Positions 1,911 through 56,142 of a stretch of 64,000 nt of DNA are shown here, piece by piece (the first letter of the stretch is position 1; every line of letters begins with the position of its first letter). The DNA lies in the sequence record NC_017972.1; one strand, 5' to 3'. A program made the position numbers and the translations under genes. A model generated the notes under the pieces. That model saw only the letters and a program-made list of their open reading frames with translations, made no database searches and was not told the DNA's origin.

Positions 1911-2364
1911 CCTGTTCTTCCTCGTCTTCTACAAAATCAACGTAGCGCACCAGCGAGCACTTGTAGTAGGTCACGCCGTCTTTAACCACACGGCAGTTAG
2001 AATTGTTGTAGCCGTTTTGGTATTTCCAGCCACCTTCCTGATACTTTTTCGGAAGCGGAGGTACGGCCATTTTAGTTTTCTGTTCGCGAATCGGAATCTC
2101 GCAATATTCGCGCACTTTACCGAACAACGGAAACGAATCGGTAAGCTCGACCGTAGCAGGCACACCGCTAAGATTGGCGAGCGCGGAAAGCAGCCCGCCA
2201 CCAGTGGTAACTAAGCGCAAAATGTTGCGGTGCGAGCGCTCACACTTGACCGTCAATTCCATATTGAAATCGGAATAGGAATCGTGGTCAGGGCGCTGGC
2301 TGTCAAAGTCCACACAGCGGCGAGTGAAACTAATGGACACTGGATAAGAAGTTTCCAGTTTCAT
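1903..2364 (-). CDS. hypothetical protein
   Basis: 153 aa ORF, GAGG RBS. Confidence 0.7.
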   Translation of the reverse strand: MKLETSYPVSISFTRRCVDFDSQRPDHDSYSDFNMELTVKCERSHRNILRLVTTGGGLLSALANLSGVPATVELTDSFPLFGKVREYCEIPIREQKTKMAVPPLPKKYQEGGWKYQNGYNNSNCRVVKDGVTYYKCSLVRYVDFVEDEEEQDE

Positions 2365-11092: not shown

Positions 11093-11194
11093 TGCATTTT
11101 CTCCACCAGTCTCAAAGAATGCACCGTGCGCCAGCCGACCAGTGAAAAGCCAGCGCATAGTGTTTGTTGCTTTCTTACTATTTACAGTTTTCGC

Positions 11195-18933: not shown

Positions 18934-18977
18934 CGCGCAGCCCTCCTATCGTTGGTTATACCTACCATTTACAGTAA

Positions 18978-19018: not shown

Positions 19019-19471
19019 TTAGGCGGCTAACACGTCGGTGAAATAGGTTGGATCATTTGCCGCTTTCTTGTCGTCTTCGCGGTCGAGGCCTTTGGCAATT
19101 GCGTAGGCGCGCACCGCTGCAAACATTGGATACTTCTGCCACGCCGGAACGTTGAGCACACCCATCGCCTCAAGGAAAATCAAATCGCCCGTTTTGCGCG
19201 TGACGTTCACGGCGCGACCGTTCACCATCACAAGGCGATAGCTGCAAATGTAATCGTGAATGACTGCGGCTTTTCCGTATTTGCCATTAGGCGGCAGCAT
19301 CCAGCGAATCCACCACGGCGTAGAAGCCAGATCGGTACGGTAGCCCGCTGGAACATTTACCTCAATTCCAGAACCGAGCATCCCGATAACGTAGGTGAAC
19401 ATTTGCCAAATGACGTAGTGGATTCCGTCGTCTTCAAATTCCGCAACAAGCGGTGTAGTAAAGCTACTCAT
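19019..19471 (-). CDS. DUF1353-family protein
   Basis: VPAGYRTDLASTP...AAVIHDYIC...DLIFLEAM pattern. Confidence 0.8.
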   Translation of the reverse strand: MSSFTTPLVAEFEDDGIHYVIWQMFTYVIGMLGSGIEVNVPAGYRTDLASTPWWIRWMLPPNGKYGKAAVIHDYICSYRLVMVNGRAVNVTRKTGDLIFLEAMGVLNVPAWQKYPMFAAVRAYAIAKGLDREDDKKAANDPTYFTDVLAA

Positions 19472-19485
19472 AAATTTTCTCCATG

Positions 19486-19519
19486 AAAAAGCCCCGCATA
19501 CCGCTAGGCACCGGGGCTT
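19486..19519 (-). terminator. intrinsic terminator (GCCTAG loop)
   Basis: aagccccg/cggggctt stem plus T5, just after the stop at 19523. Confidence 0.8.
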
Positions 19520-19522
19520 CGG

Positions 19523-20332
19523 TTACAGGTACGCTAGTGTCTGCGCTTCAAAATCCGCAAACGAATGCAGAAGCGTAAACGATACGTAGTCCGTAGTGGT
19601 GTAGACTGCGTTGGAAGTCAGCACTGCGCCACGCGCCAGCGATATAGCCGGTTCATCGAGGGCAACAATGCTAAACAACCATTGATTATTTTTCAGCACG
19701 GCAAACATCGGCTGGCCGTCAAACGCCAGAGACGCGACTACACATTTGTTTACGTCGTCATAGGCACAGGCGTGAACCGTTAGCCCGTCGATTTCCGTGG
19801 TGCCTGTAGACACAAGATTATTTAGGGTTCCTTGTAGGGATTCCACATAATCGCTGCGCACCAAAAGCACGTCCAGAATATCGTCACTAGAATCTGACAA
19901 CCATATAGCTCCGAGTCCGACACTTACTTCACTCCAATCAGAGCTGCGCAAAATAGTGCCTTGCGTAGTTCCGAACAGAGCTTCACCGTTTACGTTTCGT
20001 GCGCACACGACAGGAATAACAAACGCGTGAGCCAATGCCCAGCCATCCGCGCCTTTGACGTAGATGCCATCGGCTGCGACCGCGTAGAAACCATTAGCGT
20101 AAACAACATGCGAAAATTGTAAGTCTGAGGTACGTTTCCAATCGAATTTGTCTGAGGACTCGTAAACGCCAGTAGCCCCAATTGCAACGTAGATATTGGA
20201 ACCAAAAGCCAAGCCTAAAACAGAGTCAGGTAAAGATGCCGGTACAAACCCGTTGGATTGAACGTAAATTCCAGCTTGGTTAGTACCCGAACCACCGACA
20301 ACCAGCGAACGTCGCGGAACAGGTTTACTTAC
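19523..20332 (-). CDS. -1 frame extension (269 aa, beta-propeller-like) of the upstream structural gene, reached by a putative programmed frameshift
   Basis: frame open from the slippery site to TAA 19523; first possible start is TTG 20212 with no RBS; beta-strand repeats such as IYVAIG..GVYESSD..DW. Confidence 0.7.
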   Translation of the reverse strand, partial: VSKPVPRRSLVVGGSGTNQAGIYVQSNGFVPASLPDSVLGLAFGSNIYVAIGATGVYESSDKFDWKRTSDLQFSHVVYANGFYAVAADGIYVKGADGWALAHAFVIPVVCARNVNGEALFGTTQGTILRSSDWSEVSVGLGAIWLSDSSDDILDVLLVRSDYVESLQGTLNNLVSTGTTEIDGLTVHACAYDDVNKCVVASLAFDGQPMFAVLKNNQWLFSIVALDEPAISLARGAVLTSNAVYTTTDYVSFTLLHSFADFEAQTLAYL

Positions 20333-21249
20333 TTTTTTGTGACGTTCGCCATTACCTCAACGGACACCGGATCGCTGGTGCCGAACCGAGGGCGAGCCTC
20401 AAGTTTAATTGTGTAGATTCCCAGCGGCACGCCGGAGGCAGTACGCTCGACCGATGCCGGAATTGCGGCATTGAGTGGCTGGAATTTATATTGCTGAATC
20501 ATCTGCGTTACGCTGGCGTCAGCGTTGGTCGCAGAGTCGTCAATAATGCGGGTGCCGGTGTTGTACCAAACGAAATTCTGGCCTTTGCCGTCTTTGGTTT
20601 TTGCGTATTGCAAATCCCAACGAATCGGCTCCAGCGTGCCCTCGGGATCAACGTCCAGATAAAGCGAAATATCGTACATGTCCGTGATCAGCGGAATGTC
20701 GTCATTCAGCGAGCCAGCAGTCAGAGCAAAAGTCCAACTTTCTTCGCCTTCGATTTCGATATCGAAACCGCCTGCGTTGTCGCCGTAGTAGGTCGGATCG
20801 TTTACCTTGCGAACGGCCAAACCTAATTCGATATCGGCGTTTTTACCGATGACAAAATCATCAGCAGGATTGCCGATGCCGACCAGCATGTATTTCTTGC
20901 CACCGACTTCAACGGTGAAAGAAGTTTCTGCTTTGTTGGTTACGACCAGCGGGGCATAAGTCAGCGCGATTTGCGCAGGCGTCATACCGGGCGGGCCTTG
21001 GCAGATCAGCACGGTTCCGAAATACATGGAAATAACGGAACCATCGGCAGCGGATTCAATGTTGGAAAACACTGGAACATCCGACGAACCATAATGCGTT
21101 GCAACGGTTTTGCGGAACACACCGGAAGCGACGATTTCTTTCATTTCCGCTTCGGTGACTTGGATACGTCGAATGTTCGACGGATCACCCATATCCTGCA
21201 TGGCCTCAATAATCTGAGCCATGACACCGGAATGTTTCTGGATTTCCAT
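20329..21249 (-). CDS. putative virion structural protein ending in A_AAA_AAG-TAA
   Basis: 306 aa, beta-rich; GAGGA RBS; late-type motif TGTAATTTAAA 50 nt upstream. Confidence 0.75.
   Translation of the reverse strand: MEIQKHSGVMAQIIEAMQDMGDPSNIRRIQVTEAEMKEIVASGVFRKTVATHYGSSDVPVFSNIESAADGSVISMYFGTVLICQGPPGMTPAQIALTYAPLVVTNKAETSFTVEVGGKKYMLVGIGNPADDFVIGKNADIELGLAVRKVNDPTYYGDNAGGFDIEIEGEESWTFALTAGSLNDDIPLITDMYDISLYLDVDPEGTLEPIRWDLQYAKTKDGKGQNFVWYNTGTRIIDDSATNADASVTQMIQQYKFQPLNAAIPASVERTASGVPLGIYTIKLEARPRFGTSDPVSVEVMANVTKK
20332..20338 (-). other. -1 ribosomal slippery heptamer A_AAA_AAG
   Basis: ACA AAA AAG TAA in the 0 frame; -1 frame reads AAA AAA GTA AGT AAA CCT... without a stop. Confidence 0.75.
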
Positions 21250-21298
21250 GTGTGGATTTCCTCGGTTGCTGAATTATGGGATTGTTAGTCCCTCCACC

Positions 21299-21309
21299 TT
21301 TAAATTACA
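21299..21309 (-). promoter_or_regulatory. candidate late promoter TGTAATTTAAA
   Basis: identical 11-mer upstream of sheath 2 (56132-56142); variants upstream of other late genes. Confidence 0.55.
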
Positions 21310-56131: not shown

Positions 56132-56142
56132 TTTAAATTACA
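56132..56142 (-). promoter_or_regulatory. candidate late promoter TGTAATTTAAA
   Basis: AT-rich intergenic region upstream of sheath 2; identical to 21299-21309. Confidence 0.55.

Follow-up and report, generated by a model that had tools for sequence, protein, structure and literature searches.

The heptamer A_AAA_AAG is the shift site of the Escherichia coli dnaX gene and the most shift-prone heptamer tested in that bacterium. In dnaX and in the -1 cassettes of insertion sequence (IS) elements it lies in the X_XXY_YYZ register with a hairpin a few nucleotides downstream, and two products are made from one start codon (PMC5009743). Phage structural genes have repeatedly acquired C-terminal domains, either via frameshifting or in frame: in T3/T7 gene 10B, in the head and tail proteins of Lactobacillus phage A2 and in Listeria phages A118/A500/PSA, a shift at the end of the gene adds an accessory surface-type domain to some copies, and the Fraser-Davidson immunoglobulin (Ig)-like extensions are absent, frameshift-linked or in frame in different relatives, a pattern called 'indifference' (PMC5009743). 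In the lambda-type tail assembly chaperone G/GT, too, a conserved -1 shift close to the 3' end of a late-type phage gene yields a short and a long form. Here we describe a candidate of this kind in Pseudomonas phage Lu11, where gp042 and the downstream gene annotated as gp041 appear to be joined by a -1 frameshift at A_AAA_AAG. The analysed stretch, hereafter the window, covers the first 64 kb of the Lu11 record (NC_017972), and window coordinates are record coordinates.

Lu11 is a 280.5-kb jumbo myophage that infects P. putida. We put at roughly 0.85 the probability that gp042 and 'gp041' are a single recoded gene, in which a -1 ribosomal frameshift at A_AAA_AAG would give predicted isoforms of 33 and 62 kDa from one start codon. 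The preliminary description of this sequence had proposed an unannotated programmed -1 frameshift with isoforms of 306 and about 575 amino acids, the longer with a propeller-like extension; this proposal is strongly supported by the site in 14 loci, the joint absence of site and extension in other relatives, an in-frame fusion, a coding signature that begins at the junction, and the propeller model of the extension together with its matches to Asp-box-like repeat proteins. As that description had foreseen, standard annotation splits the locus. Both public records, those of Lu11 and of its relative HRDY3, call a separate downstream gene, and a frameshift is annotated in neither. Our literature search found no paper describing a Lu11 gp042/gp041 frameshift, nothing relevant on programmed ribosomal frameshifting in jumbo phages, and no HRDY3 paper. 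Throughout the analysis gp042 and the -1 extension were searched, aligned, modelled and weighed as two separate pieces.

The elements of the locus are as follows.

21259..21263, minus strand: Shine-Dalgarno-like GAGGA, 9 nucleotides 5' of the gp042 ATG, read directly.
21249..20329, minus strand: gp042 (LU11_gp042), the 0-frame gene, 306 amino acids, from the open reading frame (ORF) and the annotation; its 3' end reads GTC ACA AAA AAG TAA.
20338..20332, minus strand: slippery heptamer A_AAA_AAG in the X_XXY_YYZ register of gp042, read directly and the same in 14 loci.
20329..20331, minus strand: 0-frame TAA stop directly 3' of the heptamer, within the spacer, which ends the short isoform.
20324..20285, minus strand: candidate 3' stimulatory hairpin, 7 nucleotides past the heptamer, from the RNAalifold consensus and single-sequence folds.
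19523..20332, minus strand: -1 extension ORF, 269 codons plus TAA (19525..19523), encoding the linker VSKPVPRRSLVVGGSGT and then a predicted propeller.
19523..20212, minus strand: annotated gp041 (RefSeq), 229 amino acids, equal to the 3' 229 codons of the extension ORF.
20210..20212, minus strand: TTG, the annotated gp041 start, 40 codons into the -1 frame and without an upstream Shine-Dalgarno sequence.
19517..19486, minus strand: intrinsic terminator GCCCCG...CGGGGC followed by TTTTT, 3' of the extension, read directly, with a 15-nucleotide loop.

The ending of gp042, the register of its heptamer, the length of the open -1 frame and the lack of an early ATG, with the TTG at 20212 as the first possible start, all agree with what had been described before. 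The terminator previously placed at 19486 was also recovered; our scan tool did not detect it because its loop is 15 nucleotides long. An equivalent terminator lies 3' of the extension in HRDY3. After the slip, Lu11 reads ...ANVTKK|VSKPVPRRSLVVGGSG..., and 269 open codons precede the next stop in that frame, TAA at 19525..19523. The -1 frame opens just 8 codons 5' of the first post-slip codon, and it holds no ATG, GTG or TTG before the TTG at 20212. The GAGGA at 21259..21263 is the sole ribosome-binding site for both predicted isoforms, which have 306 amino acids (33.2 kDa) and 575 amino acids (61.8 kDa), the masses of the pieces having been computed separately. The predicted peptides encoded between 20332 and 20213 include SLVVGGSGTNQAGIYVQSNGFVPASLPDSVLG and the tryptic VSKPVPR and SLVVGGSGTNQAGIYVQSNGFVPASLPDSVLGLAFGSNIYVAIGATGVYESSDK, and the predicted peptide ...VMANVTKKVSKPVPR would span the junction in a non-tryptic digest.

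In the mechanism that we propose, ribosomes would initiate at the gp042 ATG and most of them would stop at the TAA after ...ACA AAA AAG, releasing the 306-residue Ig-like protein. Some would move back one nucleotide on A_AAA_AAG as the tRNA-Lys pair re-paired from AAA-AAG to AAA-AAA, probably aided by the hairpin 7 nucleotides downstream. The shifted ribosomes would then translate a linker (Pro/Arg...Gly-rich) and the propeller, together the 269-residue extension, to give a protein of 575 amino acids and about 62 kDa with the junction ...ANVTKK|VSKPVPR. Both forms would be virion components, and the efficiency of the shift would determine the fraction of copies of the Ig-like surface protein that display the propeller. 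By analogy, the Lu11 site would work like the dnaX and IS-type cassettes. It fits the known pattern of phage structural proteins acquiring C-terminal modules through a frameshift, in frame or not at all, and the relatives of Lu11 show exactly the 'indifference' described for Ig-like extensions. It differs from dnaX in that the shifted dnaX frame ends early, whereas the Lu11 shift would add 269 amino acids. It also differs from the frameshifted phage structural proteins named above: the added module is a 269-residue predicted beta-propeller rather than an Ig-like domain of about 100 residues, the Ig-like domains are already present in the Lu11 base protein, the phage is a jumbo myophage, and the virion location in Lu11 is inferred from a homolog.

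An open -1 frame beyond a stop codon is frequent in the gene-dense Lu11 genome, where the gp042 case ranks 6 of 52, and therefore carries no weight alone. We accordingly rejected it as evidence by itself. The heptamer is less common than expected: AAAAAAG occurs 14 times on the two strands of the window, compared with 25.3 +/- 4.2 expected from shuffled sequences. Ten copies are on coding strands; eight of these are in the harmless AAA_AAA_G register, and of the ten only the gp042 copy lies within a long ORF in the register that favours shifting. The scarcity and the register bias are consistent with avoidance of the shift-prone register. As judged from the sequences, the evidence beyond chance is the missing start codon together with conservation, and the comparative data are decisive.

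For this comparison the DNA of relatives was drawn from a phage collection (HRDY3), IMG/VR, JGI, ENA and Logan. Homologs of gp042 in the protein collection (n = 25) are 48-95% identical to it, with -KK, or -KK plus one residue, at the C-terminus of 23. At the nucleotide level, 14 distinct loci (Lu11, L018, L025, L005, L006/L011, L007, HRDY3, L008/L009, L010, L012, L013, L024, L029 and L030), whose base proteins are about 50-95% identical to gp042, have A_AAA_AAG in the same register, a 0-frame stop that is TAA and lies 0-1 codon past the AAG, and a -1 ORF of 260-277 codons. The check on related phages that had been called for thus found both the heptamer and the -1 register conserved. The two lysines are encoded AAA AAG without exception across these loci. 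The codon 5' of them (codon -3) is ACA, GCA, GTA or TCA, specifying Thr, Ala, Val or Ser; its pairwise amino acid identity is only 0.23, yet all pairs (100%) share A at the third base. Selection at the heptamer thus acts on nucleotides rather than on protein.

The same alignments bear on the annotated arrangement, in which the two genes are separate: translation of the propeller protein would begin solely at a start of its own, TTG 20212 or a near-cognate codon, and the heptamer would be there by chance. The separate gene called in both public records and the TTG 40 codons into the Lu11 frame fit this arrangement, as do near-cognate CTG and ATT codons at +9 and +21. However, the distance from the 0-frame stop to the first canonical start in the -1 ORFs of relatives is anything between 9 and 87 codons, no start position is conserved among them, and in 11 of 12 loci there is no canonical start before +29, counted from the first post-slip codon. 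Conservation of the extension is highest in its first ~35 residues, V[SV]KP[VA]PR[RQ]..VVGGSGT...G[IL][YF]VQ..GFVPAS, and the corresponding codons lie 5' of any canonical start in 11 of the 12 loci. In the alignment of extensions, protein conservation begins at the first post-slip codon. Pairwise differences in the GFVPAS block amount to 0.056, 0.028 and 0.457 at codon positions 1, 2 and 3, respectively; their concentration at position 3 indicates purifying selection on the -1 frame. A heptamer that is maintained at the nucleotide level whatever the preceding amino acid, a coding pattern upstream of every usable start, and a TTG with no Shine-Dalgarno sequence before it all argue against independent initiation, which we regard as very unlikely. 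The TTG at 20212 is probably not the main start and is possibly no start at all, to judge from its sequence context.

A further alternative is a decaying gene, in which an ancestral in-frame fusion lost one nucleotide and left a pseudogene remnant downstream, or in which the frame change is a sequencing artefact. An in-frame relative does exist (see below), and for Lu11 alone a homopolymer miscall would be conceivable. Against this, the same A6G and the same frame relation recur in 14 independent loci, whose sequences come from isolates as well as several assembly sources. Since all isolates and independent metagenome assemblies bearing the site read A6G, a homopolymer sequencing error is excluded. 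The extension ORF has also stayed open for 260-277 codons although its lineages share just 38-82% identity, and the substitution pattern just described is that of a selected frame. We consider decay extremely improbable.

Relatives that lack the extension provide a second line of evidence for a frameshift that links the two parts. Four distinct loci (L014, L016/L017/L021, L022 and L023) have neither the heptamer nor the extension, and in these a terminator lies directly 3' of the short gene. In the maximum-likelihood tree, L022 is nested with starred support within the frameshift clade, and therefore the heptamer and the extension were lost together there. At L022:3380-3530 the whole propeller ORF is gone, the C-terminus has changed from ..TKKS to ..TQAEPA, and the terminator follows directly after the short gene. 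This joint loss argues against two separate genes, as does the third state found among relatives. A profile search with the extension identified P0033, a single 582-residue in-frame ORF on the 115-kb contig L028. Over its first 306 residues it shares 43% identity with gp042 (E-value 3e-81), and over the rest 32% with the extension (E-value 4e-36). The L028 junction contains no slippery site, and the other two frames are closed there. Its sequence ...AKITYKEPTPTPKKTFIIGGNG aligns without gaps to the ...ANVTKKVSKPVPRRSLVVGGSG predicted for Lu11, and synteny extends to a DUF1353 gene directly downstream of the fusion gene.

Downstream of the heptamer, RNAalifold and single-sequence folds place a hairpin whose start is exactly 7 nucleotides past the heptamer (nucleotide 8) in every locus. 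Its energy is -17.2 kcal/mol in Lu11 and ranges from -12.1 to -22.8 kcal/mol across loci. The Lu11 hairpin has an outer stem ACCUG/CGGGU, an internal loop UU/UU, an inner stem CCGCGACG/UGUC-GUGG with one bulged G, and a 9-nucleotide loop. In L024 and L029 the sequence of the inner stem is different and the pairing is kept, and across the alignment 94.9% of the hairpin cells are paired. Synonymous-site conservation along the 600-codon alignment is maximal at the junction and hairpin (0.78-0.85, versus ~0.5 elsewhere). This fold replaces the short GCGA-CGT-TCGC stem that had been suggested as a stimulator and is not conserved; what is conserved is the longer hairpin ACCUG..CCGCGACG/UGUC-GUGG..CGGGU. 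An upstream GAGGT, the other stimulator put forward, lies 15 nucleotides 5' of the heptamer in Lu11 only, most relatives having GAAGTG instead.

The hairpin and the heptamer also help to separate a ribosomal shift from transcriptional slippage, in which RNA polymerase would add one A within the A6 run, so that a subset of mRNAs would fuse both parts and encode the identical protein (...TKKVSKP...). The site is indeed a homopolymeric A run, some bacterial and IS genes use transcriptional slippage (PMC5009743), and the protein sequence cannot distinguish its product from the ribosomal one. The run here is merely A6, and RNA polymerase needs neither the strictly conserved terminal G and exact X_XXY_YYZ register nor a hairpin at the spacing typical of ribosomal -1 frameshifting. 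Efficient slippage in bacteria generally requires about nine or more A or T residues. We therefore judge slippage improbable and favour a -1 shift by the ribosome.

Several observations weigh against the proposed frameshift or against parts of it. Fixed-column counts revealed no double-sided (compensatory) covariation in the hairpin. Its stability does not exceed that of sequences recoded synonymously for that peptide (z +0.05 to -1.2), and the in-frame relative forms a hairpin of -14.8 kcal/mol at the equivalent place (L028:3404-3460). No upstream Shine-Dalgarno-like stimulator is conserved among the relatives. The window contains no tRNA genes, and a search with P0033 for further in-frame fusions returned P0033 itself alone, so that the in-frame state is known from one contig. 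Finally, the virion location of gp042 is inferred solely from a 29%-identical homolog, EST35_0383 of phage PA5oct, which is annotated as a virion protein by electrospray ionization tandem mass spectrometry (ESI-MS/MS). For PA5oct, 93 virion-associated proteins have been reported (PMC7318152). The earlier suggestion that the propeller is carried on a polymeric virion appendage at fixed stoichiometry has this same homolog as its only basis and is unproven.

With regard to the hairpin, we rejected the idea that it is selected beyond the coding needs of the peptide, given the recoding null, the nil covariation and the fold of L028. In the linker, Pro codons (CCN) can pair with Gly codons (GGN), and the hairpin may therefore be a by-product of the peptide. 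Given the hairpin at the same site in L028, it may also predate the frameshift. A role as a frameshift stimulator is nevertheless physically plausible from the predicted folds. In contrast to the dnaX and IS cassettes, the Lu11 locus has no conserved upstream Shine-Dalgarno-like stimulator and no match to an Rfam frameshift element; covariance models including DnaX and the IS1222 frameshift element (FSE) gave no match at E<=10 in 20150..20450.

The AlphaFold2 (AF2) model of gp042, with a predicted local distance difference test (pLDDT) score of 85.3, comprises an N-terminal domain of ~100 residues and two Ig-like beta-sandwich domains. Foldseek matches include Ig-like or arrestin-like sandwiches and models of phage 'surface proteins'; the viral structural neighbours include a 'surface protein' of Yersinia phage fHe-Yen9-04 and, for the N-terminal domain, a stand-alone 93-residue protein of phage PaBG. 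Residues 1-100 of gp042 (20950..21249, minus strand) match this PaBG protein with a target template-modelling score (TMt) of 0.80 (BFVD S5VZG7), and tblastn aligns residues 1-114 at 30% identity. The N-terminal domain may be the anchoring part of the protein. Neither Pfam nor PHROGs contains a match for gp042, and a PDB sequence search with profiles of gp042 and of the extension returned nothing significant.

The extension had been described as propeller-like, and the structure model suggested as a check is that of a beta-propeller, with pLDDT values of 84-96 in the core (residues 35-220) and a low-confidence linker over the first 31 residues. Foldseek returned 458 PDB matches at E<=1e-3, with WD40 and other propellers at E-values of ~1e-6; among the 50 PDB matches listed, most are propellers, with a query template-modelling score (TMq) of ~0.5. 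A profile search matched 4422 proteins, many of them giant bacterial proteins that have 7-30 tandem repeats of the form ..G.G.FVAVG..G.I..S.DG..W (E-values down to 1e-63), and DUF6242 was found by Pfam in four of five repeat proteins scanned. On the strength of the model, the extension is predicted to be a single compact propeller of roughly six blades built from Asp-box-like repeats. It resembles Asp-box (BNR-like) and DUF6242-type repeat proteins in its profile matches and its AF2 propeller. It is unlike them in being a single propeller of ~six blades on a phage protein with degenerate motifs (e.g. SSDKFDW), and the extension itself has no Pfam match at E<=1 and no PHROG match, its link to DUF6242 being made by profile search only. 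When the extension was used as query in a word-indexed protein search, the sole match was the truncated gp041 of Lu11 itself, since the ORF is cut short or overlooked by gene callers. The propeller would bind a surface ligand, in adhesion or receptor recognition.

The surroundings of gp042 also distinguish it from lambda G/GT. It does not lie between the major tail and tape-measure genes; its neighbours are hypothetical genes, a DUF1353 protein, a dCTP deaminase and a phosphoesterase. Its predicted products of 33 and 62 kDa are much larger than those of G/GT, with an unrelated fold (Ig-like plus propeller). The DUF1353 protein is gp040 (19019..19471, minus strand; Pfam E-value 1.5e-22), annotated as a 'tail assembly chaperone', and a DUF1353 gene also lies a few genes downstream in L022. 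Given the Pfam match and the DUF1353 genes near the L028 and L022 loci, the chaperone annotation looks doubtful.

Two sequence motifs were noted at the borders of the unit. The motif ACTGTAAA(T/G)NGTA, a 'putative middle/late promoter' of Lu11, occurs at 18959..18974 and 11172..11187 (minus strand) and recurs right after the terminator at the end of the gp042 unit in L014, L016, L022, L023 and L002. This placement suggests a conserved promoter of the next unit. Upstream of gp042, an AT-rich GTAATTTAA-like motif is common to Lu11 (21300..21308, minus strand) and HRDY3 (L002 ~2010..2030). It has a second copy in the window at 56133..56141, differs from the annotated late motif and is possibly a promoter element. 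The late-type promoter previously placed at 21299 could not be verified: none is annotated in the record or detected by a sigma-70 scan, and the window holds just two copies of GTAATTTAA.

These comparisons permit a broader scenario for the clade of Lu11-like jumbo phages, which we offer tentatively and regard as possible rather than probable. The frameshift would fix how much of an Ig-like virion surface protein bears a propeller as its ligand-binding head, and the clade would have kept three states: none, frameshift-linked and in-frame. The linker PxPRR...VVGGSG would encode its own hairpin through the complementarity of its Pro and Gly codons, and this hairpin would be older than the frameshift. 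If true, the clade would offer a natural series for programmed frameshifting arising from an in-frame fusion, with the stimulator ready-made.

The joined reading revises the gene calls in Lu11, HRDY3 and at least a dozen metagenomic jumbo phages: the truncated 'hypothetical protein' listed there, whose start is arbitrary, becomes the C-terminal half of a predicted 575-residue protein. It provides a well-supported case of recoding in jumbo phages, outside the tail-chaperone paradigm. The predicted long form, an Ig-like stalk with a propeller head, is a candidate module for adhesion or receptor binding, and translation would control its copy number. The presence of three states among relatives, with the extension absent, frameshift-linked or in frame, makes this locus a tractable system for the origin of frameshift signals and the purpose of the ratio of short to long forms.

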